A DNA stretch of 64,000 bases from Schizochytrium sp. TIO01 (Eukaryota; Protista; Bigyra: Labyrinthulomycetes), in NCBI GenBank assembly GCA_004764695.1, contig SMSO01000033.1, positions 186,001-250,000 on the forward strand. Direction: 5' to 3'. The position numbers were made by a program, and so were the translations under genes. Numbering within the stretch: position 1 is the first letter of the stretch; every line of letters starts with the position of its first letter. Below are positions 13,357-42,793 of the stretch, one piece after another. The notes beneath the pieces were generated by a model, which saw nothing but the letters and a program-made list of their open reading frames with translations, was not told where the DNA came from and ran no database searches.

Positions 13357-16300
13357 ATGATGTTGGCGTCTGCGAGACTTTTGGGTCTTGTAGTAATCAC
13401 GTTTGCTACTCTGGGTAAAGAAGGCTTGCATGTTACTGCACAGCGATCTGACTCGTGTGTAGCAGGGGATAATTTAGTGGTGCTACCAGCAAGTTCCTTT
13501 TGTTCGTCAGAATCACAGAGCTCTGGAACTGAAGCGTCTGTATCCTCTTCCTCTGCAACAACTTCTGAAGCATGCTGTGGTGATCTCAGTGCTGCTACAA
13601 GAACTGATCTACGTTTGTTACAGGACAGCTCTAGCTCTAGCAGTCAATGTCGTAGCATTTCCTTCAGTAGAGGCTTTTGTCCGGAAGATGCTAACTGTGA
13701 TGTAACAGAGACAGAGTTGTATATTGATGTGACATTTAATGCTCAAGACAGCTCGTGTTGCTCTACCTGTCAATGTTGGGGTGATCCTTATTGTGTGGAT
13801 TTCACTGGTCAACGTGACGAGTGGGTGATCTGTGATTCTCGCGACAAGGATACGTGTAATCAGCAGAAAGCTCGCTGTAATACTGAAACATTTGATCACA
13901 ACGGAGAGCAGTGCGAATTCGTCAAAACGTCTAAGCTTCCAGGCGTCTCTGGTAAGGCTTGGCGTGGATGGGAAATTGATGGTAGCCCATGCCAATCTGT
14001 TTCGCTTTGGACTGGTGACACCAGCAAACCTGCCCCGCGAATGATCATGTATTCTCGAAACGGGTTTACCGTCAACCTCATTCTTGGAGAGCGTGGTGTC
14101 ATTACGGATACTGAGATCGTGGATGAAAATAACAAGGTGAACTATACAATCAATGCTGCGGAGTGTCTTGCCTCAAAAAAGGCATCCGTATGGACTGTTG
14201 AGGGTGCAGATGAAATCCCGTCTACATGGACTGTCTCTTCACCAACAAAATATCAGGTACAATGGCAGATCGTATCCCCAGATGAACGTGTATTTCTCAA
14301 TGTAACTTGTGTAAAGCTTTACCAACGCGCACGTCAAGACGTTACGCTAGTTGATGCACAAGAAACAGCTTCGTCAGATGACATCAGTGGCTATTGCCCT
14401 TCTGGTGTGATCTCTGAGCGAGTTGAGGCCGAGGCCAACGGCCAGAAAAATACGCTTAATCGCACGCATAGCTCCCATTGTATCACTGAAGAAATTGGAA
14501 ACTGTGGTGCGGCATGCAAATCATTCATATCTCAAGACTGCCTTACAGAGTATAATTTGGACAGTTATGTCCAATACTGGTGTTCAACGACTGATTTCAG
14601 CATGCTGGAAACCCCACTTACTGCTTCAGCATGCTACAAAAAAATTATGACAGCAAAAAACAATGAAAATTGTGATGCCGCAACGTGGGCGGAAATCATT
14701 TGTTCAATTGATGCTGCACTAGTGGGCACAGATACATACTATGAGAAGTGCCTTTCCACAATCTCAGAGTTTGGGTTTTACCAGTACTATGATGAGCGCC
14801 TTGCAGAGACAAGCCTTGGTCAGTACCTCCCCACAGCTCCTTACGAAGCCACTTCTTGTGGTTCAACTCCTGCAGACTATGATGTACAAACCTCTGACTG
14901 TGAAAGAGGTGCTGCAGTTCAATATTATGACTCAGATACTGAGACGTGGATCGAGGCATTCTTCATCCCGGAATCTAAGCCACCTTGTAGCGGAGGTATC
15001 CATGTTCAGGGCAGCGACTTCCCCCAACTTCTTCAAAACCCCCTCCGTATTTCTCAGTGCTCTGTGATGGAGGCCAAGTGTCAGATTGTAAACAAATGCC
15101 AGCCGGTGTCCGGTTTCGACTTACTACTTAACTTTGCGGCCAGCGCAGCAGCCTGCATCGTTGTTGATAGACCGACCTCTTCTCCAACCGTTTCTCCAAC
15201 CACGTTGGCTCCAGTTGTAGCACCAACCTCGTGCTACACATTAAAATATAAATACACCGGCACTCCAAATAAAATTTACAATGGTGTTTCAGCTGCAGAA
15301 GAGTGTCATTCTCTCTGCCAAAGTGAAGCTGACTTTGATTGTGCTGTATGGTCATGGTTGAAGAAGGGCAAAAAACAATGCTATTTGTGGAAAAGTAGCG
15401 ACAAAACCCTCACAAAGAGCAACAACTGGGTATCAGGACCTGCAGAGTGCCCAACAGATGCACCGACATTAGCAACTTGCTATAGCATTGATACTCTTTA
15501 CAATGGAAAGAAAGCGAAACCTGCCTCTAAAAAGGCTGCGGATTCCAGTGAATGCCAGAGCCTATGTGCAAACCTCTCGCAATGCAAATTTTGGACTTAT
15601 TTTGGCAAACAGAGCAAGTGTCTATTTTTCAAGTCTGTGACAAAGGAGGTATCAAAACCATCTCGCTTCGGTTATATCTCTGGCCCCAAAGGTTGCGTAG
15701 TCCCGGTTCAATCTACTCCTCAACCGACGCCTCAGCCCGCTGATACTGAAAATCAGACACCTGCACCAACACCAACACCCACTATGGAGCCTACAAATAA
15801 GCCCACAAAACGGACGCCGACAAAGAAGCCAACTTCTCAACCTACGCCGGAGCCGACAAAGATGCCCACTCCTCAACCTACGCCAAAGCCAACTCCTCAA
15901 CCTACGCCGGAACCGACAAAGGAACCTACTCCTCAGCCTACGCCAAAGCCCACAAAGGAACCCACGAAGGAACCTACAAATAAGCCCACTCCTCAGCCTA
16001 CGCCTAAGCCGACCAAGGAGCCTACGGAGGAGCCAACAAATAAGCCAACTCCTCAGCCTACGCCTAAGCCGACCAAGGAACCTACGGAGGAGCCTACAAA
16101 CAAGCCCACTCCTCAACCTACACCAAAGCCCACAAAAGAACCCACGGAGGAGCCTACAAACAAGCCCACTCCTCAACCTACGCCAAAGCCCACAAAAGAA
16201 CCCACGGAGGAGCCTACAAACAAGCCCACTCCTCAGCCTACGCCAAAGCCGACTAAGGAACCTACAGAAGAGCCAACAAACAAGCCCACTCCTCAACCAA

Positions 16301-18366
16301 CGCCTAAGCCCACAAAGGAACCCACGGAGGAGCCTACAAATAAGCCAACTCCTCAGCCTACGCCTAAGCCGACCAAGGAACCTACGGAGGAGCCTACAAA
16401 CAAGCCCACTCCTCAACCTACGCCAAAGCCCACAAAGGAACCCACGGAGGAGCCTACAAATAAGCCAACTCCTCAGCCTACGCCTAAGCCGACCAAGGAA
16501 CCTACGGAGGAGCCTACAAACAAGCCCACCCCTCAGCCTACGCCAAAGCCGACCAAGGAACCCACGGAGGAGCCTACAAATAAGCCCACTCCTCAACCAA
16601 CGCCAAAGCCCACAAAAGAACCCACGGAGGAGCCTACAAATAAGCCAACTCCTCAGCCAACGCCGAAGCCGACCAAGGAACCTACGGAGGAGCCTACAAA
16701 CAAGCCCACTCCTCAGCCTACGCCAAAGCCCACAAAGGAACCTACGGAGGAGCCTACAAACAAGCCCACTCCTCAGCCTACGCCTAAGCCGACCAAGGAA
16801 CCTACGGAGGAGCCTACAAACAAGCCCACTCCTCAACCTACGCCACAGCCCGTTGATACTGAAAATCAGACACCTGCACCTACGCCAAAGCCGACCAAGG
16901 AGCCTACGGAGGAGCCTACAAATAAGCCCACTCCTCAACCTACGCCAAAGCCCACAAAGGAACCTACGGAGGAGCCTACAAATAAGCCAACTCCTCAGCC
17001 TACGCCGAAGCCGACCAAGGAACCTACGGAGGAGCCTACAAACAAGCCCACTCCTCAACCTACGCCAAAGCCCACAAAAGAACCCACGGAGGAGCCTACA
17101 AATAAGCCAACTCCTCAACCTACGCCAAAGCCCACAAAGGAACCCACCGAGGAGCCTACAAATAAGCCAACTCCTCAGCCTACGCCAAAGCCGACCAAGG
17201 AACCTACGGAGAAGCCTACAAAAACGCCCACCCCTCAGCCTACGCCTAAGCCGACCAAGGAACCTACGGAGGAGCCAACAAAGAAGCCCACTCCTCAACC
17301 TACGCCAAAGCCCACAAAGGAACCCACGGAGGAGCCTACAAAGAAGCCAACTCCCAAGCCAACGCCGAAGCCAACCCCCAAGCCAACGCCGAAGCCGACT
17401 AAGGAACCTACGGAGGAGCCTACAAAGAAGCCAACTCCCAAGCCAACGCCAAAGCCGACGCCCAAGCCAACTCCCAAGCCAACGCCTAAGCCGACCAAGG
17501 AACCTACGGAGGAGCCTACAAAGAAGCCAACGCCAAAGCCAACGCCAAAGCCAACTCCCAAGCCAACGCCTAAGCCGACCAAGGAGCCTACGGAGGAGCC
17601 TACAAAGAAGCCAACTCCCAAGCCAACGGCGAAGCCGACGCCCAAGCCAACTCCCAAGCCAACGCCGAAGCCGACTAAGGAACCTACGGAGGAGCCTACA
17701 AAGAAGCCAACTCCCAAGCCAACGCCAAAGCCGACGCCCAAGCCAACTCCCAAGCCAACGCCTAAGCCGACCAAGGAGCCTACGGAGGAGCCTACAAAGA
17801 AGCCAACTCCCAAGCCAACGCCAAAGCCGACGCCCAAGCCAACGCCCAAGCCAACTCCCAAGCCAACGCCTAAGCCGACCAAGGAGCCTACGGAGGAGCC
17901 TACAAAGAAGCCAACGCCAAAGCCAACGCCAAAGCCAACTCCCAAGCCAACGCCTAAGCCGACCAAGGAGCCTACGGAGGAGCCTACAAAGAAGCCAACT
18001 CCCAAGCCAACGCCGAAGCCGACGCCCAAGCCAACTCCCAAGCCAACGCCGAAGCCGACTAAGGAACCTACGGAGGAGCCTACAAAGAAGCCAACTTCCA
18101 AGCCAACGCCAAAGCCGACGCCCAAGCCAACTCCCAAGCCAACGCCTAAGCCGACCAAGGAGCCTACGGAGGAGCCTACAAAGAAGCCAACTCCCAAGCC
18201 AACGCCAAAGCCGACGCCCAAGCCAACGCCCAAGCCAACTCCCAAGCCAACGCCTAAGCCGACCAAGGAGCCTACGGAGGAGCCTACAAAGAAGCCAACT
18301 CCCAAGCCAACGCCAAAGCCGACCAAGGAACCTACGGAGGAGCCTACAAAAAAGCATAGTGAGTAG
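13357..18366 (+). CDS. Giant secreted mucin-like protein A: signal peptide, Cys-rich VWD/C8-like head, 2 PAN/Apple-like domains, Lys/Glu-rich Pro-Thr repeat tail
   Basis: First ATG at 13357 ([20 protein letters not shown], signal-peptide-like). [17 protein letters not shown] motif. PAN-like C-x3-C...C-x-x-W-(S/T)...C domains at ~15232-15450 and ~15478-15696. PT repeats run to the C-terminus; no TM helix or GPI signal. Confidence 0.88.
15715..18351 (+). repeat. Coding tandem repeat: 60-bp ([20 protein letters not shown]) units grading into (PTPK)[13 protein letters not shown] units
   Basis: The 60-nt sequence lines from ~16021 to 16800 are near copies of one another; underlying 12-bp P-T-x-x periodicity. 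Confidence 0.97.
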
Positions 18367-19919
18367 CTGAGGAGGAAGCCATCAGAGCCAGCTGGTATTG
18401 TGGATTAAACTCGAACCTTCACTTTAACGAGGTTATCAACCTATCTAAACTGTCACCTCTACTATTTCATCACGACAAGCACGAGCTGTCAAACGCAAAA
18501 GTCAAGGTCAGTGGAGCTGTTTGGGCTATCCATGAAGACTCGGTAGAAAAGACATGAACACACGGGTAACGGCTGTAATCTCTCCATCCCTAATTATAAT
18601 ATAAAGGATTTGATCATATGTTCCTTTCAGTTTTCGATACATTACTTTTTGTGCATTCGGTTGTTGCGTAGGCTATCATAGTCAGTGAGACAACTAGTAG
18701 GCTTATGTCAAATCAAGAAAAAGATTTCAAGCAAGATGAAGTTTGCTGAGATCTCAATCCAAGGAACTAGTTGACAAAACACTGCTAAAACTCCGGGCAT
18801 CCCTTTTAAAAGACCCCATGAACATAGGGCTTGCAATAGAGCAGAGATAGATAACCAACCCTACGTGGCTAAGAGCCAAGAACCAAAAGTGCGATTCGAC
18901 ATACCTAGAGCCAAGTATGATGTAGCTCAAGCTTATGGCTGAAGACGTTGAGTTAATGCAACCCCGTCAGTTTCATTTAATACAGTTAAAGATTGTCTTA
19001 GCCTCCAAATTATTACATGAGTCTTTGAATTCACTTCACAAGGACAGTAGTTTGTAACTCTTAAAATCAACCATCGTAATCCCTTCATCTTCATTTTCAA
19101 CTTCCAGCTGCCCAGGTTCATCCTTGAGCAATGTTTAATTTTTTGTCATTACCTGCAGCATTTGTTATGGGAGCAAAACTTGGACCAAGTTTTGTGTAAA
19201 TAAAGGTATTTAAAGGGTGAATAGCTTCAACATCTTCAAGAATGCCATGTTTGTCTAGATAACCCTTGATGAAAGCAAACTATCTCCACTTACAACCATT
19301 GCTTGGAAAATGATTACTGACGGCATCATTCTCAATTCCCCTGGGGAAACAAAGCGTCGTCGGTTAACTCCGGCACTGTTCCTTCCAAAGACCCTCTAAT
19401 TTCATACCAGGGGCTACAAAACCATTACAGGGATTGACTTGATTTGATGAGGCTTCAGAACTACACATCAAGCTAATGGGTTTTGACCATGCAATAAATG
19501 CGCAATCATTTTTCTAAATAATCTTGGCAAACCTGGCCAGCTCCTTCTTCAGCCAACACAAAGTTGTTACCTACAACTAGTTATCAAGATGTTCGTTACG
19601 ACGGTTGCCTATTCCATTTAATTACTCTTTTAGCAAATTTTAGTCCTGTCCTGAAGACCAACTGAGGTGCTTTTACTGGATGGTTCGCTTTTATGAAATT
19701 AATTGGTTTCTGATTGAGAAGCGACTTGACTTTGACAAAAATGTAATAATAGGCCCAACGTAAACAAACGATTAAAGAAATTAAAATACAGGTCAAACGA
19801 AGCGTTTTACGCTTCAACGGGGCTGAAACTCTGCCGGGTATTGCTCTCGCTCCTTGTATCTGTAGCCCTGCGGCCTCGTGCATGGGCGATCAAGCGTTGC
19901 CATAAACAGTTGTACAGTC

Positions 19920-20095
19920 CTTATCAGGCTCCATGCCATAAGCAATGAGTATCCTGCGAAAAGGTATGCAACGTCTACTGCCATAATCTGAACCCTTGAG
20001 ATGCAAACTTATCAGGCTCCATGCCATAAGCCATGAATATCCTGCGAAAAGGTATGCAACGTCTTCTGCCATAATCTGAACCCTTGAGATGCAAA
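19920..20095. repeat. Intergenic tandem duplication, 2 x 88 bp
   Basis: CTTATCAGGCTCCATGCCATAAGC...CCCTTGAGATGCAAA starts at 19920 and 20008, with about 3 mismatches. Confidence 0.95.
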
Positions 20096-21122
20096 TTGGT
20101 ACTTCTATGTCATTCAAGACATTCTCCTTGTGAGACATACAACGGCAAGGTGCTCTGGATGAGTATCCTATGGCAATAAAAGTTGTTATTCAAGGAGGCC
20201 TTTTCATATCTGTCCTCTTACTCTTGTCCGTGTTTATCCAAACAAGTTAGCTCTCCAAACAATCAAGACTGAAGACTCAACCCAATAATGTGATCAAAGT
20301 GTCTAGGAAAAGCAGCTGAAGGTCGCCACCTGCAATGCATATTTTGAAGCTTATTTTCATGCCCTTCCCACTTTGACGCTTCAGTTGAAGTTTTCAGAAA
20401 GGAATCGCTGTATAGCATAGGGGCTTTTCATAATGTTAATCTTGAATACTTAGTGCCTTCCAATTCTAATAGGCTAGTTCCCCTTTCGTTTCAGTCCACT
20501 TTAATATGCTCGTAGCAGGCGCTGTTCTACAGGGACAAATTGTCGACTTGGGCTGACTCACCAGTGTGCCAACCCGGGGTTTCGATGGCTGGCTGGCTAC
20601 TTGTACTATATTCTGGGAGACACTCTCTAAGATTGGTTTCGACAATACGATGCTACACGAGGAATGGATATTAAAGTCAGAGGAACAGCTTATCAGGCTA
20701 CGAGCCGCAGAGTTCGCACGGAGGTAGTCTAATGTTTTAAAAAGCCAGGAGAACTTTGAACTTCAAGAGCAAAAGCGTTAAACGCATGCGGAGAAAAAAA
20801 GAAAAAGAAAAAAGACTCTGGTTGGTTAGAAGCTTTGTGCAATTTCTTCACCTCTAATTCGCCGCGGCGCCTACAAGTTAATATTGATCGTTACCAACCT
20901 CTCTACGCGGTAAAGGAACCTGTCCCAGAATGTACAATACTTCTGCTGGGTAAGAACCGAGATAACTTTGAAATCAAAGCTTCTGCACTCGTGTCCCTTC
21001 GTCAAGAGAGCACCTAGGTAGAACTACTTAGGTAAGTGTCATCGTACAATTCTATGAAAATAGAAAAGCATGCCTTTCTTTTCATTTTCTCAAGCATTAC
21101 TACTAGGTAGTCTGTTTTTATT

Positions 21123-21183
21123 CTATAAAGTTTCTGTGGTATGTACACCTACCTATAAAGTTTCTGTGGTATGTACACCTACC
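21123..21183. repeat. Intergenic tandem duplication, 2 x 30 bp
   Basis: CTATAAAGTTTCTGTGGTATGTACACCTAC twice, exact. Confidence 0.95.
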
Positions 21184-29445: not shown

Positions 29446-32400
29446 ATGATGCCACCCGTTAAGACTCTAGCGTGGGGCACAGTCGTGGTTCATATCCTTG
29501 CGCTCCGTGATCAACAAGTCGCAGGCGCAAGACCCGGATCATGTGATGCGACAACAGACACCATTTACATGCCATCTGCTGCATACTGCGAAGACTCTAG
29601 CTCTGGCCTCAGCTTTACAGATGGTGGCAGTACAACAGGGATAAACGAAGCTTGTTGTGGAGACTATGGAACAGAGAGAGATGATATGCGGAGAATCCTT
29701 CAGACATTAGGGAGTGATGAATCTTCAAGGTGCCGAAGCATCGAGCTTGACACAGCCTTTTGCCCAAGTGATTCAGACTGTGTTGTCTCAGAAACAAATC
29801 TCACAATGGATGTAAGCTTTGTGGCAGACGACACATCATGCTGCTCTACTTGCCAATGCTGGGGTGACCCCTTTTGTGTGGATTTTGCTGGCGAACGTGA
29901 AGAATGGGTCATTTGCGATTCGCGAAATAAGAACACATGCAACCAGCAAAGATCAAAATGTAAGAAGCATACTTACGACCATCTCGGAAACCAATGCGTA
30001 TGGGTCAAGAACTCAAAGCTTGTTGGTGAATCAGGATCTACATGGCGTGGCTGGGACCTCGATGGCAGTCCATGCCAGTCCAAATCAATCTGGACTGGCG
30101 ACACAAGCAAGCCATTGCCTGTCATGCTTATGTACTCTAGGAATGATTTCTCAATTTATCTCATACTTGGCGAGCGAGGTGTAATCACGAACACAAAGAT
30201 CGTGACAGCGGATGGAACAAACTACACTCTTAACGCGATGGACTGTCTTGACAACCCAAACTCGACATCTGTTTGGGAAATCGAAGGTACTTCATCGAGC
30301 TTGCCTGACTCCTGGAGCGTGAGTGAACTCTCTGAATATGAAGTGCAATGGCGCATTGCATCTTCTGATGGGCTAGTTTTTGCAAATGCAACTTGTGTAA
30401 GGTTGGCTGAGCGTGCACGCCTTGACTTAACCGTTATTGATACTCAAAACACAAACACCACATCTGGTAGCCCTGCCGGCTACTGCCCAAGTGGTGTGAT
30501 CGCCGAGAAAGCTATTGCATATTCCAAAGGAGAAAAAAATACTCTATCCACAGCACATAGCTCTACGTGTGTTCAAAAGGAAATTGGATCTTGCGGATCC
30601 GCTTGTAAAGCTTTTGTTACGCAAGATTGCCAGGTCGACTACAATCTTGACAGAAACGTCAAATATTGGTGCTCAATTACAGATTTAAGCTACCTTGATA
30701 CTCCCATGTCTGCCGATGAATGTTATGAAGCTATCATGACACCCACGGATGGAGAGACATGCAATGCTGCTGCATGGGCCAATATGATATGTGAAATTGA
30801 TGCAAACCTCGTAGGAACGACGAACTACTATGACAAGTGTTTGTCTACAATCGCAGAATTCGGTTTCTACCAGTACTATGACGAGCGTCTAGCCGAGGAC
30901 CTTACGCCACATCTCCCCACCCAACCATACGGAGCAACATCGTGTGGTGCATCTGTTGCTGATTATGGTCTTCAAACCTCAGACTGTGAAAGAGGTGCAG
31001 CAGTAGAATACTACGACGCTGACCTTGATTACTGGGTTCAAGCATTTTTTATCCCGGAAAGCAAACCACCCTGCAATGGCTCGCTTTCCATTCTTGGCAG
31101 TGAGTACCCAGTGTTACTTCAAAACCCAATCCGTGTTTCGCAATGTTCAGTTCTGGAGTCAAAGTGCCAGATTGAAAATGCGTGCCAGCCTGTGTCTGGC
31201 GTCAACGTTGATTTCTTGTTTTCTGCCTCCGCGGAAGCATGCCCGACCGATGAACGTCCTACCAAAGCACCTACTCCACAGCCTACACTCCTGCCTACGG
31301 CATACCCCACTTCAATGCCTACAATCAGCCCAATTGAAGCCTGTTATCTCGACGACATAAAATACAAGGGTGACCAGATCGGCTCGTATAAGAGATTGAC
31401 ATCGCTTGAACTTTGCCAAGAGTTTTGCTTGTCAAAAGATGCGTGTGAATACTTTTCCTTTTTTGGAAAACGGAACAAATGTTTCATTTATAGATCCATC
31501 ACAGAGGAGGTAGCAGTGTCCGCCTCTAAACTGTACGTATCAGCATCAAAGGAATGCGTTGTGGAACCCTCAGGCGAAACACCTGCACCAACTTTGCAGC
31601 CTACAATTGATCCAGCGTCCTCTACAGGGGCTCCTTCATTAGCACCATCTAACGTGCCCACCTCCAGCCCCACTGATGTTCCCACCTTGGCACCTACCGA
31701 TGCTCCTACACAAGCCCCGAGCGATGCTCCCACATCAGCGCCATCTGACGTGCCAACATCGAGCCCCACTGATGTTCCCACCTTGGCACCTACCGATGCT
31801 CCTACACAAGCCCCGAGCGATGCTCCCACATCAGCGCCATCTGACGTGCCAACATCGAGCCCCACTGATGTTCCTACGCAAGCCCCGAGCGATGCCCCTA
31901 CATCAGCGCCATCTGACGTGCCGACATCGAGCCCCACGGATACTCCTACGCAAGCCCCGAGCGATGCCCCTACATCAGCGCCATCTGACATGCCGACATC
32001 TGACGTGCCAACATCGAGCCCCACTGATGCTCCTACATCAGCACCGAGCGATGCCCCTACATCAGCGCCATCTGACGTGCCGACATCGAGCCCCACTGAT
32101 GTTCCTACGCAAGCCCCGAGCGATGCTCCTACATCCGCACCATCTGACGTGCCGACATCGAGCCCCACTGATGCCCCTACATCAGCACCGAGCGATGCCC
32201 CTACATCAGCGCCATCTGACGTGCCGACATCGAGCCCCACTGATGCTCCTACATCAGCACCGAGCGATGCTCCTACATCAGCGCCATCTGACGTGCCGAC
32301 ATCGAGCCCCACTGATGTTCCTACGCAAGCCCCGAGCGATGCTCCTACATCAGCACCATCTGACGTGCCAACATCGAGCCCCACCGATGCTCCTACATCA

Positions 32401-35370
32401 GCACCGAGCGATGCTCCTACATCAGCGCCATCTGACGTGCCGACATCGAGCCCCACTGATGTTCCTACGCAAGCCCCGAGCGATGCTCCTACATCCGCAC
32501 CATCTGACGTGCCGACATCGAGCCCCACTGATACCCCTACATCAGCGCCATCTGACGTGCCGACATCGAGCCCCACTGATGTTCCTACGCAAGCCCCGAG
32601 CGATGCTCCTACATCAGCGCCATCTGACGTGCCAACATCGAGCCCCACCGATGCTCCTACATCAGCACCGAGCGATGCTCCTACATCAGCGCCATCTGAC
32701 GTGCCGACATCGAGCCCCACTGATGCTCCTACATCAGCACCGAGCGATGCTCCTACATCAGCGCCATCTGACGTGCCCACATCGAGCCCCACTGATGCTC
32801 CTACATCAGCGCCATCTGATGTGCCCACATCGAGCCCCACTGATGCTCCTACGCAAGCCCCGAGTGATGCTCCTACATCAGCACCATCTGATGTGCCAAC
32901 AGTACAGCCAACCTTATCGCCATCGACCTGTACAGACTACACACTAGGTCGATGGACACCAGCCGGATATGATACTATTAAAAATGTCGCCACTTGGGAA
33001 GACTGTCAAGACCTTTGCGATGCAGATTCCGAATGTAATTATTGGTCTTACCATGGCGTAGCAACCAGTAGTAACGACAATTATGGCTACACCTGTATTC
33101 TGTTCAACTCGGTTAACTCTTTGACTCAAACAGGATCTCAGAGCACCTGGTTATCAAGCTGCCCTATAACAGTGACTTCAAGTCCCACTTTACCACCCTC
33201 TACAACGCCCACGTTAGCCCCAAGTGATGCCCCTACATCGGCGCCAACTGATGCTCCCACATCGGCACCAACTGATGCTCCCACATCGGCACCAACTGAT
33301 GCTCCCACATCGGCACCAACTGATGCTCCTACTTCGGCGCCAACTGATGCTCCTACATCGGCGCCAACTGATGCTCCCACATCGGCACCAACTGATGCTC
33401 CTACTTCGGCGCCAACTGATGCTCCTACGGTAGCCCCGTCTGATGCCCCTACATCGGCGCCAACTGATGCTCCTACATCAGCGCCTACTGATGCACCCAC
33501 GTTAGCCCCGAGTGATGCTCCTACATCGGCGCCAACTGATGCTCCTACGTTAGCCCCGAGTGATGCTCCCACATCGGCACCAACTGATGCTCCCACATCG
33601 GCACCAACTGATGCTCCTACTTCGGCGCCAACTGATGCTCCTACATCGGCGCCAACTGATGCTCCCACATCGGCACCAACTGATGCTCCTACTTCGGCGC
33701 CAACTGATGCTCCTACTTCGGCGCCAACTGATGCTCCTACGGTAGCCCCGTCTGATGCCCCTACATCGGCGCCAACTGATGCTCCTACATCAGCGCCTAC
33801 TGATGCACCCACGTTAGCCCCGAGTGATGCTCCTACATCGGCGCCAACTGATGCTCCTACGTTAGCCCCGAGTGATGCTCCCACATCGGCACCAACTGAT
33901 GCTCCCACATCGGCACCAACTGATGCTCCTACTTCGGCGCCAACTGATGCTCCTACATCGGCGCCAACTGATGCTCCCACATCGGCACCAACTGATGCTC
34001 CCACATCGGCACCAACTGATGCTCCTACTTCGGCGCCAACTGATGCTCCTACATCGGCGCCAACTGATGCTCCCACATCGGCACCAACTGATGCTCCTAC
34101 ATCGGCGCCAACTGATGCTCCCACATCGGCACCAACTGATGCTCCTACTTCGGCGCCAACTGATGCTCCTACTTCGGCGCCAACTGATGCTCCTACGGTA
34201 GCCCCGTCTGATGCCCCTACATCGGCGCCAACTGATGCTCCTACATCGGCGCCAACTGATGCTCCCACATCGGCACCAACTGATGCTCCTACATCAGCAC
34301 CTACTGATGCACCCACGTTAGCCCCGAGTGATGCTCCCACGTCGGCACCAACTGATGCTCCTACATCAGCGCCTACTGATGCACCCACGTTAGCCCCGAG
34401 TGATGCTCCCACGTCGGCACCAACTGATGCTCCTACATCAGCGCCTACTGATGCACCCACGTTAGCCCCGAGTGATGCTCCTACGTTAGCCCCGAGTGAT
34501 GCCCCTACATCGGCGCCAACTGATGCTCCTACATCGGCGCCAACTGATGCTCCCACATCGGCACCAACTGATGCTCCTACATCAGCGCCTACTGATGTAC
34601 CCACGTTAGCCCCGAGTGATGCTCCTACATCGGCGCCAACTGATGCTCCTACATCAGCGCCTACTGATACACCCACGTTAGCCCCGAGTGATGCTCCCAC
34701 ATCGGCACCAACTGATGCTCCTACATCAGCGCCTACTGATGCACCCACGTTAGCCCCGAGTGATGCTCCCACATCGGCACCAACTGATGCTCCTACATCA
34801 GCGCCTACTGATGTACCCACGTTAGCCCCGAGTGATGCTCCTACATCGGCGCCAACTGATGCTCCTACATCAGCGCCTACTGATGCACCCACGTTAGCCC
34901 CGAGTGATGCTCCCACATCGGCACCAACTGATGCTCCTACATCGGCGCCAACTGAAGCTCCCACGTTAGCCCCGAGTGATGCTCCTACACAAGCACCATC
35001 TTCTTCGCCAACACCAAGCCCTACTCCGTTGCCAACGAGCAACCCAGCGTCTTCCGCAGGCGATACATCCTCTCCAACGGGCAGCCCAGGCACCTGCTCC
35101 GGGACTACACCTGGACATTACAATGGAAATAATAAGCAACAGCTCAATGATTACAGTAAGATCGAAACCTATCAAGAGTGCAAAGAACTATGCGAAGAAG
35201 ACCCCGAATGCAACTATTGGTCCTATCACGGTGCAGCAGCCAACAATAATGCGGACGTGGGCTATCACTGTCACACCTTTTCTTCTTACCAGAGCTTTGT
35301 CGAAACAGGAGACTCAAGCACATGGGTATCCAACTGCCCTGGCGACCCGGTTCATGGCGGAAGCTCTTAA
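29446..35370 (+). CDS. Giant secreted mucin-like protein B: same Cys-rich head, 3 PAN/Apple-like domains, Ala/Ser/Asp-rich Pro-Thr repeats
   Basis: First ATG at 29446 (MMPPVKTLAWGTVVVHILAL, weaker signal peptide). The head is colinear with protein A ([34 protein letters not shown]). PAN-like domains at ~31342-31557, ~32929-33162 and ~35095-35337. Confidence 0.88.
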   Translation: MMPPVKTLAWGTVVVHILALRDQQVAGARPGSCDATTDTIYMPSAAYCEDSSSGLSFTDGGSTTGINEACCGDYGTERDDMRRILQTLGSDESSRCRSIELDTAFCPSDSDCVVSETNLTMDVSFVADDTSCCSTCQCWGDPFCVDFAGEREEWVICDSRNKNTCNQQRSKCKKHTYDHLGNQCVWVKNSKLVGESGSTWRGWDLDGSPCQSKSIWTGDTSKPLPVMLMYSRNDFSIYLILGERGVITNTKIVTADGTNYTLNAMDCLDNPNSTSVWEIEGTSSSLPDSWSVSELSEYEVQWRIASSDGLVFANATCVRLAERARLDLTVIDTQNTNTTSGSPAGYCPSGVIAEKAIAYSKGEKNTLSTAHSSTCVQKEIGSCGSACKAFVTQDCQVDYNLDRNVKYWCSITDLSYLDTPMSADECYEAIMTPTDGETCNAAAWANMICEIDANLVGTTNYYDKCLSTIAEFGFYQYYDERLAEDLTPHLPTQPYGATSCGASVADYGLQTSDCERGAAVEYYDADLDYWVQAFFIPESKPPCNGSLSILGSEYPVLLQNPIRVSQCSVLESKCQIENACQPVSGVNVDFLFSASAEACPTDERPTKAPTPQPTLLPTAYPTSMPTISPIEACYLDDIKYKGDQIGSYKRLTSLELCQEFCLSKDACEYFSFFGKRNKCFIYRSITEEVAVSASKLYVSASKECVVEPSGETPAPTLQPTIDPASSTGAPSLAPSNVPTSSPTDVPTLAPTDAPTQAPSDAPTSAPSDVPTSSPTDVPTLAPTDAPTQAPSDAPTSAPSDVPTSSPTDVPTQAPSDAPTSAPSDVPTSSPTDTPTQAPSDAPTSAPSDMPTSDVPTSSPTDAPTSAPSDAPTSAPSDVPTSSPTDVPTQAPSDAPTSAPSDVPTSSPTDAPTSAPSDAPTSAPSDVPTSSPTDAPTSAPSDAPTSAPSDVPTSSPTDVPTQAPSDAPTSAPSDVPTSSPTDAPTSAPSDAPTSAPSDVPTSSPTDVPTQAPSDAPTSAPSDVPTSSPTDTPTSAPSDVPTSSPTDVPTQAPSDAPTSAPSDVPTSSPTDAPTSAPSDAPTSAPSDVPTSSPTDAPTSAPSDAPTSAPSDVPTSSPTDAPTSAPSDVPTSSPTDAPTQAPSDAPTSAPSDVPTVQPTLSPSTCTDYTLGRWTPAGYDTIKNVATWEDCQDLCDADSECNYWSYHGVATSSNDNYGYTCILFNSVNSLTQTGSQSTWLSSCPITVTSSPTLPPSTTPTLAPSDAPTSAPTDAPTSAPTDAPTSAPTDAPTSAPTDAPTSAPTDAPTSAPTDAPTSAPTDAPTSAPTDAPTVAPSDAPTSAPTDAPTSAPTDAPTLAPSDAPTSAPTDAPTLAPSDAPTSAPTDAPTSAPTDAPTSAPTDAPTSAPTDAPTSAPTDAPTSAPTDAPTSAPTDAPTVAPSDAPTSAPTDAPTSAPTDAPTLAPSDAPTSAPTDAPTLAPSDAPTSAPTDAPTSAPTDAPTSAPTDAPTSAPTDAPTSAPTDAPTSAPTDAPTSAPTDAPTSAPTDAPTSAPTDAPTSAPTDAPTSAPTDAPTSAPTDAPTSAPTDAPTVAPSDAPTSAPTDAPTSAPTDAPTSAPTDAPTSAPTDAPTLAPSDAPTSAPTDAPTSAPTDAPTLAPSDAPTSAPTDAPTSAPTDAPTLAPSDAPTLAPSDAPTSAPTDAPTSAPTDAPTSAPTDAPTSAPTDVPTLAPSDAPTSAPTDAPTSAPTDTPTLAPSDAPTSAPTDAPTSAPTDAPTLAPSDAPTSAPTDAPTSAPTDVPTLAPSDAPTSAPTDAPTSAPTDAPTLAPSDAPTSAPTDAPTSAPTEAPTLAPSDAPTQAPSSSPTPSPTPLPTSNPASSAGDTSSPTGSPGTCSGTTPGHYNGNNKQQLNDYSKIETYQECKELCEEDPECNYWSYHGAAANNNADVGYHCHTFSSYQSFVETGDSSTWVSNCPGDPVHGGSS
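31650..32900 (+). repeat. Coding tandem repeat (APSD-APTS-APSD-VPTS-SPTD...), 12-bp base period
   Basis: Direct inspection of DNA and translation. Confidence 0.95.
33205..35000 (+). repeat. Coding tandem repeat (APTD-APTS)n, 24-bp unit, with a 312-bp higher-order duplication
   Basis: GCTCCTACGGTAGCCCCGTCTGATGCC recurs at 33421, 33733 and 34189. Confidence 0.95.
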
Positions 35371-38305: not shown

Positions 38306-41300
38306 ATGATCCAAACCAAGGCAACGACACTTGCCTTGGCATTGCTTGCGGCTGTATCATACCTTCAGGAGCTCCCTGGCGCATCAGCCAGACTGTCTTC
38401 ATGCCAAGCAACCACTGATATGATTACCATGCCTGCTAGTGCATTTTGTGAAAGCAGCACTAGCGGATTAAGCACAAGTGCCAGCGAGTTGGGCGTGGGT
38501 GAAGCGTGCTGTGGTGACTTTGGCTCTGAAAGAACCGACCTTCGCCGTCGCTTCTTGCAGGCACTGGGAACAGAAGATCGATGCCGCAGCGTACAGCTGG
38601 ACAGTCCTTACTGCCCGGTTGACTCAGAATGCGTGGTCACAGAGACCAGCCTAACCTTACAGCTTAGCTTTGAAGCGGACGAAACACCATGTTGCTCGAC
38701 TTGTCAGTGTTGGGGCGACCCATTTTGCGTTGACTTCACTGGTGAACGTGACGAATGGGTCATATGCGACTCTCGCGATGGTAAAACATGCAACCAAAAG
38801 AAGAACCGCTGCAACAAGAAGACATTTGATCACAATGGAGATAGTTGCGAATGGGTCCGAACTTCAAAGACAGTTGGTGCATCGGGAGAAACATGGCGAA
38901 GCTGGGATATCGATGGAAGTCCATGCCAATCCACATCAATCTGGACTGGAGATACCAGTAAGCCGCTTCCAACAATGTTAATGTATTCTCGCGATGACTT
39001 TGCTGTTTACCTTGTTTTGGGTGAACGTGGAGTCATTACACATACCAAGATTGTGAGTGGCTCAACGAACTATTCTATCAATGCGCAGGAATGTCTCGAA
39101 AACCCGTCCGAGAGCGCATGGGTTATTGAAGGAGTATCTAGTACCCTGCCTGAATCGTGGACTGTGAACGAATTATCTGAGTACGAGGTCCAGTGGCGTA
39201 TCTCTGGCGACAATGATCACATTTTTACAAATGTATCTTGTATTCAGTTGGCTGAACGTGCTCGTCAAGACGTGACACTTATTGATACTCAGGATGTCAA
39301 TACTACATCAGGTAGTTTGAGTGGATATTGCCCAACAGGAGTCATTTCAGAGCGGGTGGCTGCAGAGGCAAAGGGACAAAAAAATACACTTGCTCGAACA
39401 CATAGTGACAAATGTATGGTACAGGAAATCGGAAATTGTGGTGCTGCTTGCAAGTCGTTCGTTACACAGGAGTGTCAGGTTGAGTACAATCTTGAACGTA
39501 ATGTGGAGTATTGGTGCTCGGCTGTTGATCTTGGCCTACTTTCTACCCCTCTAACTTCCGAAGAGTGCTTTGATATCATCATGACCCCTGCAGCTGGTGA
39601 AACATGTGATGCAGCAGCTTGGGCAGAGTTAATTTGTGACATTGACGCAGCTCTTGTTGGGACTAGTGGTTATTATGACAAATGTCTTACAACTATTGCA
39701 GAATTTGGGTTTTACCAATATTATGATGAGCGCCTGGCAGCTGACCTTCACCCGCGTTTACCAAGCGCACCATATGGAGCTATTTCGTGTGCTGCTTCTG
39801 TTGATGACTATGACATGCAGTCGTCAGAGTGTGAGCGGGGTGCTGCAGTTGAATATTACAGCACAGAGAACGAAGAATGGGTTCAGGCATTTTTCATCCC
39901 CGAAAATCGTCCCCCCTGCAACGGAGAGCTCGTAATTGAAGGAAGCGCATACCCAGAGCTTTTGCAAAACCCAGTTCGCGTGTCTCAATGTTCTATCATG
40001 AGCTCGAAGTGCCAGGTTGAGAACACTTGCCAGCCAGTGTCAGGTATGCAAGTGGACTTTGTCTTTGAAGCTTCAGCTGAAGCTTGCCCTGGAGGAGGAC
40101 CATCAGGCGCCCCCTCAGAATCCCCAACTTTGGCACCTAGTGCAGCCCCAACAGTCAGCCCAACAGGTGCGCCAACAATCAACACTGACTGCTATGTTTA
40201 CGGGAAGAGATACAAAGGCAAAGCATCCAAAAGCTTTACGAAGGTTGATTCGGCTGAAGAGTGCCAAGCTAAATGTGTTGCAGAGACAAACTTTGACTGC
40301 AAGATTTGGTCTTGGCGTCGCAACAATAAACAAAATTGCTTGCTTTGGAAAACCGACAGCCAACCATCTGTTTCAAATAGTGTTTGGGTTCTTGGATCCA
40401 AAGTCTGTTCACCAACCCAGGCACCAACTCAAGCGCCTACGCAATTGCCAACTCAGGCACCTACCCAATTGCCAACTAATACACCTACACAAATGCCAAC
40501 CCTAGTTCCGACTGAAGCGCCTACACAAGCACCGACTGGTGCACCAACACAGGCCCCGACTGGTGTACCAACTAATGCCCCAACACAAGCTCCAACTGAT
40601 GCACCAACACAATCACCAACTGACGCACCAACCCAGTCACCGACGCAAGCTCCCACAAATGCGCCTACGCAATCGCCAACTAATGCACCGACTGATGCAC
40701 CGACTGATGCACCGACTGATGCACCGACTGATGCACCAACTGATGCGCCTACGCAGGCTCCCACAAATGCACCTACGAAGTCGCCAACTGATGCACCAAC
40801 TGATGCACCAACTGATGCACCAACTGATGCACCAACTGATGCACCAACACAAGCACCAACACAAGCACCAACACAAGCACCGACTGAGGCACCAACACAA
40901 GCACCGACTGATTCACCGACACAATCGCCAACTCAAGCACCGACGGAAGCACCGACACAATCGCCAACTATCGCGCCTACAGACTCGCCTATTTCAAGCG
41001 AGGGGACTACAGATGCTCCCACGTCTACTCCTACAGACTCGCCTACAGAATGTACAGATTACACTCGCGGAAGGTACACGCCAAACCCTTATGACGTCAT
41101 CAAGGATGTGACTACATGGGAAGCGTGTGATGAAATTTGCGACAGCGAGTCAGAGTGCAACTACTGGTCCTATCACGGTGATCCTACTGAGAAAAATGAG
41201 AATGTAGGCTATACGTGCGAGCTCTACGATACTGTGAACAAACTCGTTGTAACAGGTAGCCAGAGTACGTGGATCTCAAGCTGCCCAGGTGAATTCACGT

Positions 41301-42793
41301 CAAGTCCTACGCAATCCCCAACTGATGCTCCTACACAGGCACCAACACAATCGCCAACTGAGGCACCGACTCAAGCACCAACTCAGTCGCCAACTGATGC
41401 TCCTACACAGGCACCAACACAATCGCCAACTGAGGCACCGACTCAAGCACCAACTCAGTCGCCAACTGATGCACCGACACAGGCACCAACTCAGTCGCCA
41501 ACTGATGCACCGACACAGGCACCAACTCAGTCGCCAACTGATGCACCGACACAGGCACCAACACAGGCACCAACTCAGTCGCCAACTGATGCACCGACAC
41601 AGGCACCTACACAGGCACCAACTCAGACCCCGACACAGGCACCAACACAATCGCCAACCCAGGCACCGACTCAAGCACCAACACAATCGCCAACTGAGGC
41701 ACCGACTCAAGCACCAACTCAGTCGCCAACTGATGCACCGACACAGGCACCTACACAGGCACCAACTCAGACCCCGACTCAGGCACCAACACAATCGCCA
41801 ACCCAGGCACCGACTCAAGCACCAACTGACGCACCAACTCAGTCGCCAACTGAGGCACCGACTCAAGCACCAACTCAGTCGCCAACTGATGCACCTACAC
41901 AGGCACCGACCCAGGCACCAACTCAGTCGCCAACTGATGCACCGACACAGGCACCAACACAATCGCCAACTCAGTCTCCAACTCAGGCACCAACACAATC
42001 GCCAACTGACGCACCAACTGACGCACCGACTCAAGCACCAACTGACGCACCAACTCAGTCGCCAACTGAGGCACCGACTCAAGCACCAACTCAGTCGCCA
42101 ACTGATGCACCTACACAGGCACCTACACAGGCACCAACTCAGTCGCCAACTGATGCTCCGACACAGACACCAACTCAGGCACCAACACAATCGCCAACTC
42201 AGTCTCCAACTCAGTCACCAACTCAGTCGCCAACTGATGCACCGACGCAGGCGCCAACTCAGGCACCAACTGATGCACCAACACAATCGCCAACTGATGC
42301 ACCGACACAGACACCAACTCAGTCGCCAACTCAGTCGCCTACTCAGACGCCGACTCAGGCACCAACTGATGCTCCTACACAGGCACCTACGCAGGCACCA
42401 ACTCAAGCACCAACACAATCGCCAACTGATGCCCCAATTTCGAACGAGGGAATTACGGATGCTCCTACAGCAGCCCCAGCTTCAAATGAAGAATTAACAG
42501 ATGCTCCCACGTCTACTCCTACAGACTCGCCTACAGAATGTACAGATTACACTCGCGGAAGGTACACGCCAAACCCTTATGACGTCATCAAGGATGTGAC
42601 TACATGGGAAGCGTGTGATGCCATTTGCGACAGCGAGTCCGAGTGCAACTACTGGTCCTATCACGGTGATCCTACTGAGAAAAATGAAAATGTAGGCTAT
42701 ACGTGCGAGCTCTACGATACTGTGAACAAACTCGTTGTAACAGGTAGCCAGAGTACGTGGATCTCAAGCTGTCCTGATTTTGATCTAGACTAA
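38306..42793 (+). CDS. Giant secreted mucin-like protein C: same Cys-rich head, 3 PAN/Apple-like domains, Gln/Ala/Asp-rich Pro-Thr repeats
   Basis: 1495 aa with a clear signal peptide (MIQTKATTLALALLAAVSYL) and WGDPFCVDFTG. PAN-like domains at ~40190-40408, ~41051-41284 and ~42539-42772. Confidence 0.9.
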   Translation: MIQTKATTLALALLAAVSYLQELPGASARLSSCQATTDMITMPASAFCESSTSGLSTSASELGVGEACCGDFGSERTDLRRRFLQALGTEDRCRSVQLDSPYCPVDSECVVTETSLTLQLSFEADETPCCSTCQCWGDPFCVDFTGERDEWVICDSRDGKTCNQKKNRCNKKTFDHNGDSCEWVRTSKTVGASGETWRSWDIDGSPCQSTSIWTGDTSKPLPTMLMYSRDDFAVYLVLGERGVITHTKIVSGSTNYSINAQECLENPSESAWVIEGVSSTLPESWTVNELSEYEVQWRISGDNDHIFTNVSCIQLAERARQDVTLIDTQDVNTTSGSLSGYCPTGVISERVAAEAKGQKNTLARTHSDKCMVQEIGNCGAACKSFVTQECQVEYNLERNVEYWCSAVDLGLLSTPLTSEECFDIIMTPAAGETCDAAAWAELICDIDAALVGTSGYYDKCLTTIAEFGFYQYYDERLAADLHPRLPSAPYGAISCAASVDDYDMQSSECERGAAVEYYSTENEEWVQAFFIPENRPPCNGELVIEGSAYPELLQNPVRVSQCSIMSSKCQVENTCQPVSGMQVDFVFEASAEACPGGGPSGAPSESPTLAPSAAPTVSPTGAPTINTDCYVYGKRYKGKASKSFTKVDSAEECQAKCVAETNFDCKIWSWRRNNKQNCLLWKTDSQPSVSNSVWVLGSKVCSPTQAPTQAPTQLPTQAPTQLPTNTPTQMPTLVPTEAPTQAPTGAPTQAPTGVPTNAPTQAPTDAPTQSPTDAPTQSPTQAPTNAPTQSPTNAPTDAPTDAPTDAPTDAPTDAPTQAPTNAPTKSPTDAPTDAPTDAPTDAPTDAPTQAPTQAPTQAPTEAPTQAPTDSPTQSPTQAPTEAPTQSPTIAPTDSPISSEGTTDAPTSTPTDSPTECTDYTRGRYTPNPYDVIKDVTTWEACDEICDSESECNYWSYHGDPTEKNENVGYTCELYDTVNKLVVTGSQSTWISSCPGEFTSSPTQSPTDAPTQAPTQSPTEAPTQAPTQSPTDAPTQAPTQSPTEAPTQAPTQSPTDAPTQAPTQSPTDAPTQAPTQSPTDAPTQAPTQAPTQSPTDAPTQAPTQAPTQTPTQAPTQSPTQAPTQAPTQSPTEAPTQAPTQSPTDAPTQAPTQAPTQTPTQAPTQSPTQAPTQAPTDAPTQSPTEAPTQAPTQSPTDAPTQAPTQAPTQSPTDAPTQAPTQSPTQSPTQAPTQSPTDAPTDAPTQAPTDAPTQSPTEAPTQAPTQSPTDAPTQAPTQAPTQSPTDAPTQTPTQAPTQSPTQSPTQSPTQSPTDAPTQAPTQAPTDAPTQSPTDAPTQTPTQSPTQSPTQTPTQAPTDAPTQAPTQAPTQAPTQSPTDAPISNEGITDAPTAAPASNEELTDAPTSTPTDSPTECTDYTRGRYTPNPYDVIKDVTTWEACDAICDSESECNYWSYHGDPTEKNENVGYTCELYDTVNKLVVTGSQSTWISSCPDFDLD
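40410..41048 (+). repeat. Coding tandem repeat (APTQ/APTD/SPTD)n
   Basis: 12-bp units such as GCACCAACTGAT and GCACCAACACAA. Confidence 0.95.
41300..42440 (+). repeat. Coding tandem repeat (SPTD-APTQ-APTQ)n
   Basis: 12- and 36-bp periodicity visible in the DNA. Confidence 0.95.

Follow-up and report, generated by a model that had tools for sequence, protein, structure and literature searches.

The window, a stretch of 64,000 nucleotides from contig SMSO01000033.1 of Schizochytrium sp. TIO01, contains three intronless genes, co-oriented on the plus strand, each of which forms a stop-free open reading frame over 1500–2000 codons when counted from the first ATG. Gene 1 (13357..18366, 1669 aa) encodes a signal-like N-terminus, a Cys-rich head, two PAN/Apple modules and a Lys/Glu-rich Pro-Thr repeat tail. 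Gene 2 (29446..35370, 1974 aa) is arranged in the order signal-like N-terminus, head, PAN1, PT/S/D repeats, PAN2, PTDA repeats and PAN3, and gene 3 (38306..42793, 1495 aa) in the order signal-like N-terminus, head, PAN1, PTQA/PTDA repeats, PAN2, further repeats and PAN3. A first-pass annotation had described three co-oriented single-ORF genes of ∼1500–2000 aa sharing a Cys-rich head of ∼600 aa, 2–3 PAN/Apple-like domains and long Pro/Thr tracts, with no TM helix or GPI signal, and it was borne out in each of these particulars.

Termini, repeats and PAN modules

The N-termini of all three proteins were signal-like, with a 10-aa Kyte-Doolittle window of 2.2–2.8, as were those of 47 of the 75 full-length homologues (10-aa window, Kyte-Doolittle ≥2.0). 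Windows of 19 aa exceeding 1.6 were restricted to gene 1, namely its N-terminal signal-like segment and a borderline segment in its head (aa 584). As the C-termini are hydrophilic, no TM or GPI-type tail was found in any of the three proteins.

The Pro/Thr tracts consist of in-frame tandem repeats with periods of 12, 24, 36, 60, 72 and 96 nt, all multiples of 3 (Tandem Repeats Finder), and match Pfam PT. PT(K/E) repeats occupy 15839..18355 of gene 1 (plus strand; periods 60, 96 and 180 nt; Tandem Repeats Finder and translation). The first PT-rich array of gene 2 (31801..32885; periods 72/144/216 nt) produced the highest Pfam PT score, 82 bits, while in the second (33216..34989) a 72-nt unit (APTDAPTS) is repeated 24.6 times. 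Gene 3 carries arrays at 40488..40953 (Tandem Repeats Finder) and 41318..42427 (periods 12/36/48 nt). Outside the heads the proteins contain 19–31% Pro and 25–34% Ser+Thr, so that long PTS tracts of the kind found in gel-forming mucins are present, and the net charge of the tails is +67 in gene 1, −146 in gene 2 and −68 in gene 3. Owing to the repeats, ORFs also stay open on the antisense strand and in other frames, such as one of 901 aa on the minus strand at 15652–18357.

Six-Cys PAN modules number two in gene 1, three in gene 2 and three in gene 3, and they contain every Cys located C-terminal of the heads. Pfam PAN_1 (PF00024, cut-off 21.4) gave scores of 38, 29.6 and 51.6 bits and PAN_4 (PF14295, cut-off 27) gave 28.8, 29.1 and 31.5 bits. 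The two modules of gene 1 are adjacent (15232..15696; aa 626–698 and 708–780, six Cys each; PAN_1 51.6, PAN_4 31.5 bits). In gene 2, PAN1 (31342..31557) scored just below the PAN_1 cut-off (E 4e-4, 20.6 bits) with the six-Cys pattern intact, PAN2 lies at 32929..33162 (PAN_4, 28.8 bits) and the C-terminal PAN3 at 35095..35337 (PAN_4, 29.1 bits). In gene 3, PAN1 (40190..40408) scored 29.6 bits with PAN_1; PAN2 (41051..41284) and the C-terminal PAN3 (42539..42772), which are 98.9% identical, fell below the PAN_4 cut-off (E 3e-5, 24.3 bits and E 2e-5, 24.8 bits respectively). The three modules with sub-cut-off scores are nevertheless paralogous to the remaining PANs by tblastn. As a binding module, PAN is frequent in Schizochytrium sp. 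TIO01, with at least 56 matches genome-wide.

The Cys-rich head and its family

The heads are 56–67% identical pairwise over ∼600 aa; each has ∼570 aa and 36 Cys, an even number, and no free Cys is therefore evident. They are located on the plus strand at 13444..15156 in gene 1 (571 aa; alignments A2, A3 and A5), 29530..31242 in gene 2 and 38390..40087 in gene 3 (566 aa, the sequence modelled). The head motifs quoted in the first-pass annotation were present, the GDP motif, which ends in (Y/F)CVDF(T/A)G, at aa 129–151 and GYCP(S/T)G ∼205 aa further on, where about 200 aa had been given. In gene 1 the GDP motif block (13756–13809) and GYCPSG (14389–14406) fall within a VWD-fold part at ∼13744–14415. 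The corresponding part of gene 2 is found at ∼29827–30504 (GDP motif block 29839–29892) and that of gene 3 at 38678–39349 (GDP motif block 38690–38743, GYCPTG 39323–39340).

Across the 71 head domains of alignment A3, 21 columns were invariant. C-x3-GDP and the Phe at +7 were present in all 71 and Gly at +9 in 54, giving a consensus of [SA]-F-[DN]-G with spacing equal to that of the canonical GDPHYxTFDG. Of the 71 domains, 12 carry the His of GDPH; the three window genes all lack it and have F or Y at this position, where the family as a whole has E, H, F, L, R or N. G-[FY]-C, close to the end of the VWD part, was invariant across the family alignment, and an additional Cys pair brackets GDP in about two thirds of the domains (49/71).

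Pfam VWD (PF00094) matched neither the three heads at E≤1 nor their isolated VWD parts at E≤10, and neither VWD nor C8 was matched by any of the 71 A3 members at E≤0.1 or the 50 remote A4 members at E≤0.01. PDB profile searches with the head were empty, as was a six-frame VWD search of the genome, a weak search since the controls also gave nothing. One of the 50 remote relatives matched Pfam RGM_C, a VWD-type domain (E 0.002).

An AF2 model of the gene 3 head (m61717c141584), built from an alignment of 71 sequences, had a pLDDT of 85.4 and a pTM of 0.82. Fold searches assigned model residues 99–315 to the VWD beta-sandwich. The top Foldseek matches in the PDB were MUC2, MUC5AC and MUC5B, with VWF further down (E down to 3e-6, ∼370 columns); the structural alignments start at the GDP motif (model residues 99–103), and those of ∼370 columns pass co-linearly through the helical module that follows. 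The best single structural match was Cypridina luciferase, an enzyme, and hence a role in assembly does not follow from the VWD fold as such. Among the language-model neighbours of the head and helical part were VWD, VWFD, VWD+C8 and C8 clusters, with scores of 0.75–0.87 that serve as leads only. As modelled, the head has at its core a VWD beta-sandwich so divergent that sequence databases do not recognize it.

The helical module (model residues 313–455) consists of eight helices over ∼140 aa and contains 10 Cys, of which six are family-invariant. Its position, the co-linear Foldseek alignment and the weak language-model leads make it plausible that this is a C8 domain; it is roughly double a C8 domain in size, and Pfam C8 did not match the isolated part at E≤10 or any of the 71 A3 members. 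The first-pass suggestion of divergent VWD-C8 mucin analogues was upheld by the modelling for VWD, with C8 a plausible candidate; the polymer formation, adhesion and ectoplasmic-net matrix that it proposed are putative. Model residues 1–97 and 470–566 form a beta-rich part, and these N- and C-terminal segments may close into one extra beta-sandwich. Pfam detected none of the modules TIL, E, CK and VWC, the last two having been looked for in head-plus-proximal constructs. If the model is correct, the fold used for assembly by animal mucins and VWF is present, unrecognized by sequence, in predicted secreted, mucin-like proteins of a thraustochytrid.

With a head profile, 56 or more copies of the domain were recovered from this genome, the majority in double-head proteins in tandem arrays, and a search for taxonomic range recovered 123 proteins among 1.84 billion representatives. 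The named relatives were mostly labyrinthulomycete 'hypothetical proteins', QPX was among the organisms with family members, and several relatives were ORFs in the transcriptomes of Thraustochytrium sp. LLF1b and Mucochytrium quahogii; no named diatom sequence occurred among those of the 123 matches with a checkable source. By sequence, the head is a member of a large unannotated protist family, and only the PAN-tailed architecture, found in these three genes alone, is special to the locus, which goes beyond the first-pass description.

Strain differences in gene 3 comprised 15 synonymous and two non-synonymous changes, a ratio indicative of purifying selection. Taken with the 56 genome matches and 123 representatives, this bias places the observation far beyond chance. 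Gene 3 was covered by contigs of four public runs, one of which begins at 38232, 74 nt 5′ of the ATG, and one run (X6) carried a 24-nt in-frame deletion at 40458, directly upstream of the first PT array. Depth steps of 3–26 fold relative to the neighbouring gene, and contigs ending at the gene edges, suggest that these runs are RNA, although this is a guess. Among the public runs listed, 24 from 12 studies had contigs of the whole stretch or part of it.

Possible roles outside the cell

These data appear to favour, with somewhat better than even probability, an interpretation in which the three paralogues are secreted, mucin-like modular glycoproteins acting outside the cell, and we infer a role in the extracellular matrix, coat, mucus or an adhesive. 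On this interpretation each protein has a signal peptide followed by a disulfide-rich globular head with a VWD core, a helical Cys-rich module in the C8 position, and PAN/Apple modules spaced along extended Pro/Thr rods, the repeat number of which varies between strains. The proteins are probably heavily O-glycosylated, and the PT rods would then act as glycosylated spacers, while the PAN modules may bind glycans or proteins. Through the VWD head the proteins may associate with one another or attach to further components of the matrix, a part that VWD assemblies play in mucins, VWF and zonadhesin, and the polycationic tail of gene 1 could interact electrostatically with the polyanionic ones of genes 2 and 3. 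Counting against a polymer is the lack of multiple N-terminal D assemblies, TIL/E modules and a CK knot, the polymerization modules of animal mucins and VWF.

A bolder form of this interpretation, which we consider improbable, is that thraustochytrids independently built a gel or glue by combining an assembly head of cryptic VWD type with lectin-like PAN modules and PT rods that bear glycans. The heads would associate with one another, or be cross-linked once the invariant, disulfide-clamped Asp-Pro bond had been cleaved, and the oppositely charged rods of gene 1 (+67) and of genes 2 and 3 (−146 and −68) would condense like a complex coacervate. If this were true, it would supply the mucus, wall or adhesive material of thraustochytrids with its protein backbone, as in the QPX mucus that is associated with virulence.

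It is possible, though not likely, that the proteins are secreted or surface-located but monomeric, with a VWD-like head that binds a ligand or acts in catalysis, on the pattern of RGM, vitellogenin and Cypridina luciferase, rather than serving assembly. They would then be lectin-like sensors, adhesins or scavengers in which, for example, PAN and head bind prey, detritus or microbial glycans. Such a role is consistent with the lack of TIL/E or CK modules and of an odd cysteine, with the diversifying tandem arrays of the family, a pattern also known for recognition proteins, and with the frequency of PAN as a binding module in this genome. However, very long PT rods with repeated PAN are more typical of matrix, mucin and adhesive proteins than of soluble binders, a catalytic motif is neither known nor detected, and selection on gene 3 is strongly purifying and not diversifying.

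More doubtful again is that these are structural glycoproteins of the cell-wall scales, of the hydroxyproline-rich type, and not a mucus-like secretion. The walls of thraustochytrids consist of scales that derive from the Golgi and contain protein and sulfated polysaccharide, in which head and PAN would anchor the protein, PAN/Apple being carried by the oomycete wall lectin CBEL. The prolines of the PT tracts would be hydroxylated, and the tracts would carry arabinose or galactose, as do the HRGPs of plants and algae. The Pro content of the tails and their strict P-T-x-x periodicity agree with this, yet there is no wall-anchoring motif or GPI signal, and the extensin-type SPPPP and YxY cross-link motifs are absent from the three translations. 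That the ORFs are non-functional, either chance frames kept open by low-complexity repeats, as repeats here do in antisense and other frames, or decaying pseudogenes, is effectively refuted by the conservation of the non-repetitive 570-aa heads, the absence of stops, the confident head fold, the synonymous bias and the contigs from the 24 public runs listed.

Comparison with known systems

The secreted, mucin-like proteins proposed here resemble the D assemblies of MUC2, MUC5AC, MUC5B, VWF and FCGBP in that the VWD part of the head starts at a Cys followed by GDP-x4-F-x-G, a helical Cys-rich module occupies the C8 position, and the proteins, with signal-like N-termini, bear long Pro/Thr/Ser tracts. 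The VWD part ends in G-aromatic-C in place of the GLCG of mucins. Unlike the D assemblies of mucins and VWF, the head shows no similarity that Pfam or profile searches of the PDB can detect, GDPH has lost the conservation of its His and about two thirds of the family domains have the extra Cys pair around GDP. The VWD-C8-TIL-E order is replaced by a double-sized helical module with no TIL, E, VWC or CK, the head has additional N- and C-terminal beta segments, and the PT tracts are interspersed with PAN modules. Each protein has one head as against D1-D2-D'D3; those of genes 2 and 3 end in PAN and that of gene 1 in PT repeats, as against the cystine-knot of gel-forming mucins.

Cypridina luciferase and RGM are likewise Cys-rich secreted proteins, RGM_C being the domain matched by one remote family member, and the luciferase has two VWD units, as in the double-head relatives. 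In contrast to the three proteins, the luciferase is an enzyme and RGM a GPI-anchored signalling ligand, and neither has PT rods or PAN.

In related lineages, six-Cys PAN/Apple modules serve for binding outside the cell in wall or adhesive proteins, namely oomycete CBEL and apicomplexan micronemal proteins, where they are paired with CBM1 or other modules. To our knowledge, no protist PAN adhesin of this kind has a VWD-like head or kilobase-scale PT repeats.

The GDPH domain of diatoms was reportedly defined by Lachnit et al. (2019). Its Gly-Asp-Pro-His motif is conserved, whereas in the head family GDP is invariant and the three genes have F or Y as fourth residue; the two were compared by motif only. 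The diatom proteins are recognized as vWD by InterPro (PMC7335047), while the three heads are not. PAN modules, present in all three proteins, are not reported in the published descriptions of diatom vWD/GDPH proteins that were considered. Diatom VWFD clusters were among the language-model neighbours of the head, a weak resemblance at the level of a lead, and the GDPH/vWD proteins of diatom adhesive trails (Ac629 of Amphora coffeaeformis and the vWD family of Seminavis robusta) share with the three proteins a stramenopile origin and a secreted, modular, PTS-rich character.

Three genes, their modules and their surroundings

Genes 1, 2 and 3 lie on the forward strand at 13357-18366, 29446-35370 and 38306-42793 and are stop-free over 1669, 1974 and 1495 aa respectively from the first ATG. 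The first-pass annotation had claimed three co-oriented single-ORF genes with a Cys-rich N-terminal head (~600 aa), two to three PAN domains and Pro/Thr tracts; ORF analysis, Pfam and the repeat periods bore this out, and the head motifs it quoted were found where it had placed them. Each head spans ~570 aa and contains exactly 36 Cys, with pairwise head identities of 56-67%. Six-Cys PAN/Apple modules number two in gene 1 and three each in genes 2 and 3; several exceed the gathering cut-offs of Pfam PAN_1 and PAN_4, and the modules are separated by long Pro/Thr-rich (PT) tracts, which in the DNA are tandem repeats with every period a multiple of three. All three proteins begin with a hydrophobic, signal-peptide-like N-terminus (best 10-aa Kyte-Doolittle window 2.2-2.8), outside which a hydrophobicity scan of the translations detected nothing that could serve as a TM helix or GPI signal, as had also been claimed. 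The net charge of the non-head part is +67 in gene 1 (15700-18366), which is Lys/Glu-rich and polycationic, and -146 in gene 2 (31560-35090) and -68 in gene 3 (40410-42530), which are Asp-rich and polyanionic.

The second and third PAN modules of gene 3 (41018-41287 and 42506-42790) share 98.9% protein identity, which indicates a recent event, either duplication within the gene or gene conversion. Short-read contigs from two runs jump between these two modules ('goes back 1494'). Long antisense or alternative-frame ORFs, of up to 901 aa, overlie the PT repeats on the reverse strand at 15652-18357, 31488-32840, 33138-35093 and 41300-42190; these are by-products of repeat composition and not genes.

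The 11 kb gap between genes 1 and 2 (18400-29400) contains no ORF longer than 154 aa, and tblastn detected no further or decayed head or PAN copy within it. It holds an 88-nt two-copy repeat (19920-20095) and may contain spliced or non-coding genes. Three paralogous ORFs of the FA_hydroxylase superfamily (Pfam FA_hydroxylase, E ~1e-11) are located on the reverse strand at 3133-4167, 5438-6454 and 42956-44122. Other neighbours are ordinary eukaryotic housekeeping genes, encoding a WD40 protein (46495-48249, forward), a TMEM161-like protein (48726-50246, reverse), a Sec24-like COPII subunit (52072-55434, reverse), an enoyl-CoA hydratase (60233-61240, forward) and a JAB/MPN protein (61973-63811, reverse).

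Gene 3 was covered by contigs from four public sequencing runs belonging to four studies; one run was identical to the window and the other runs differed by ~1%. Seventeen coding differences were listed for run X1, 15 synonymous and two non-synonymous, and the 906 nt 5' of the ATG carried 20 differences, about the same number as 2.4 kb of coding sequence. The head profile additionally matched 123 proteins among 1.84 billion cluster representatives. The trio are real genes under constraint. An origin of the ORFs as artefacts of the repeats was rejected, in view of the conserved non-repetitive heads, the stop-free frames, the confident head model and the synonymous excess in gene 3. In run X6, labelled as another strain or organism, gene 3 is shortened by an in-frame deletion of 24 nt at 40458, just upstream of its first PT array. 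In-frame length change is the expected behaviour of a mucin-type variable repeat, and this indel points to repeat-number polymorphism. That the four runs represent RNA is a guess, and it was drawn from the size of their contig sets (30-47 Mb against the 64-Mb genome), from steps in contig depth, the fatty-acid-hydroxylase gene that borders gene 3 on its 3' side reaching 3-26x the depth of gene 3 across the four runs, from the recovery of that neighbour as a discrete ~1.8-kb contig in 4/4 runs, and from a contig of one run that begins 74 nt before the gene 3 ATG. On the same grounds gene 3 would be transcribed, and its expression is probable.

Predicted fold of the head

Sequence comparison did not place the head in a known family. 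Pfam VWD, C8 and TIL gave no match in the three heads, in the 71 members of the family alignment (E<=0.1), in 50 remote relatives (E<=0.01) or in the isolated VWD and helical parts (E<=10). Neither the head profile (built from 3 or 71 sequences) nor a profile restricted to the VWD part (41 sequences) retrieved a relevant match from the PDB sequences, and no match came from a six-frame genome search for Pfam VWD and C8, a weak negative as the controls were equally silent.

AlphaFold2 supplied with the three window sequences alone gave a model with a pLDDT of 32.6, which was set aside; with the 71-domain alignment, the gene 3 head (566 aa) was modelled with a mean pLDDT of 85.4 and a pTM of 0.82, and 308 of its residues reached a pLDDT of 90 or more. 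The first-pass annotation had described the head as VWD-like and named AlphaFold and Foldseek as the check, and this route recovered a VWD fold on the predicted model: the top Foldseek matches in the PDB were D assemblies of MUC2, MUC5AC and MUC5B together with Cypridina luciferase (E down to 3e-6, probability 1.00, ~370 columns); the D assemblies of VWF came further down the list. A second structure search, independent of Foldseek, in which the model was aligned to 48,161 representative chains, scored Cypridina luciferase at 12.2, MUC5B at 11.5, VWF at 11.3, MUC2 D3 at 11.1, MUC5AC at 10.3, FCGBP at 9.6, the MUC2 C-terminal D4 at 9.4, RGMB at 8.7 and vitellogenin at 8.6.

The structural alignments begin at model residues 99-103, which is exactly the CC-x-x-C-x-C-W-GDP block. 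The G, D and P of this block and a Phe seven residues past the Gly are invariant in 71/71 family domains, and the consensus then reads [S/A]-F-[D/N]-G. These residues are spaced as in the canonical signature of VWD domains, GDPHY-x-T-F-D-G, and in the place of the GLCG that ends a VWD domain the family has an invariant G-[F/Y]-C (model residues 312-314). Pfam RGM_C, a VWD-type domain, gave a sub-threshold match (E 0.002) in one of the 50 remote relatives. From the predicted model, the motif spacing and this single sub-threshold match, we conclude that model residues ~99-315 are a genuine VWD domain, though one of extreme divergence.

Model residues 313-455 form eight predicted helices with 10 Cys, six of them family-invariant, and lie where D assemblies have C8. 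A C8 domain had been claimed to follow the VWD part, and the long co-linear Foldseek alignments through the module are compatible with C8. The module has double the size of a C8 domain and no C8 model matched it; its identity with C8 is no more than plausible. Language-model neighbours of the helical part alone included clusters annotated as diatom "VWFD domain-containing" (0.87), VWD+C8 (0.77) and C8 (0.75), scores that are to be read as leads.

The head family in the genome and beyond

The head profile detected at least 56 domain copies in the same genome (64 Mb, 37 contigs), the majority of the 56 matches being pairs within ORFs of ~1150 aa (double-head proteins). Tandem arrays of these were located at C32:1.79-1.89 Mb, C32:2.24-2.26 Mb, C36:3.53-3.58 Mb and C4:0.216-0.234 Mb (C denoting contigs of the genome). 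Domains from these arrays are included in the 71-domain alignment and the model, and the fold assignment therefore covers them too. In a quick maximum-likelihood tree with SH-aLRT support, the three window heads and one paralogue from contig C13 formed a clade (99%) whose sister group (100%) was made up of the N-terminal heads from double-head proteins on C36 and C4, and the C-terminal heads formed a separate clade (100%). A co-varying Cys pair around GDP (C-x-GDP-x-C) is present in 49/71 domains; it is carried by N-terminal-type heads and lacking in C-terminal heads.

Among the paralogues, the C13 gene (L004:1303-4578, corresponding to G000:C13:4818611-4821886) stands closest to the trio, its head being 58-63% identical. 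Behind a PTDA repeat tract it has, in place of PAN, the first part of a VWA domain (D-x-S-G-S; DIFWIVDNSGSI), after which the ORF stops, possibly at an intron; Pfam VWA matched one of the 50 remote relatives scanned. PAN_1 has at least 56 matches in the genome and shares an ORF with a head only in the three window genes, PAN was not found among the seven long and 50 remote relatives scanned, and a collection of 5.8 billion proteins contained no relative above 37% identity to the trio. These comparisons of sequence suggest that the head-PAN-PT architecture is specific to the window locus and its strains, as it appears to be.

All named relatives are annotated as "hypothetical" or "uncharacterized"; they come from Hondaea fermentalgiana, Mucochytrium quahogii (QPX), Thraustochytrium sp. 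LLF1b (transcriptome) and two records of Durusdinium trenchii, giving a named range that is mostly labyrinthulomycete. The members from D. trenchii, a dinoflagellate (P0007 and P0060; CAK9026336.1 and CAK8991180.1), lie on short contigs of 3.9 and 9 kb; either the family ranges more widely among taxa, or that assembly is contaminated with thraustochytrid DNA. Metagenome and Logan homologues are many and include a GDPH-bearing, AT-rich-looking clade.

Proposed function and relation to known systems

The trio proteins would be exported and their PT tracts O-glycosylated into stiff rods; at the ~0.25 nm per residue usual for mucin domains, the ~840-880 residues of the gene 1 tract would extend to some 200 nm. 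The PAN modules may bind glycans or proteins, and the head may let the proteins self-associate or dock, a role that VWD assemblies have in mucins, VWF, zonadhesin and the trail proteins of diatoms. The opposite tail charges (+67 against -146 and -68) would suit a matrix or glue, and oppositely charged rods encoded in adjoining genes recall coacervate-forming marine adhesives. We consider it reasonably probable that the trio are matrix or adhesive mucin-like proteins. TIL/E, CK and multiple D assemblies are absent from these proteins, and the animal polymerisation mechanism is therefore not simply transferable. Cypridina luciferase, the top structural match, cautions that a VWD fold need not mean assembly. 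A monomeric binder or sensor is an unlikely reading. Wall structural proteins of the HRGP type are more improbable still, and that proposal overlaps with a matrix or adhesive role.

The window locus encodes mucin-like proteins with a Pfam-invisible head that has a VWD fold on the predicted model, and we would classify the finding as a cryptic branch of the VWD superfamily with a new domain architecture, which widens the known range and sequence space of that superfamily. The family alignment could seed a new domain model. Thraustochytrids matter in ecology, in aquaculture disease (QPX) and in biotechnology (DHA), and the trio are candidate protein components of their uncharacterised extracellular matrix, wall scales or mucus; through them, knockouts and proteomics can put the adhesion and matrix biology of these protists to the test.

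In animals, VWD assemblies drive the polymerisation that underlies mucus and blood clotting, and outside animals they are documented mainly from diatom adhesives. In full-text searches no VWD-like, mucin-like or secretome protein of this kind was found described for thraustochytrids or labyrinthulomycetes, and for the virulence-associated mucus of QPX only a glycoprotein content is stated (PMC3775781). Proteins of diatom adhesive trails have PTS tracts alongside a GDPH domain described as "diatom-specific", and vWD is the annotation of many of them (10.1101/2023.03.06.531300; PMC7335047; PMC8027222); they are the nearest stramenopile precedent for the trio. The diatom proteins are recognised by databases and retain the His of GDPH, whereas the head family is unrecognised and mostly lacks it, with His in 12/71 domains and in none of the trio, and the PAN modules are a feature of the trio.
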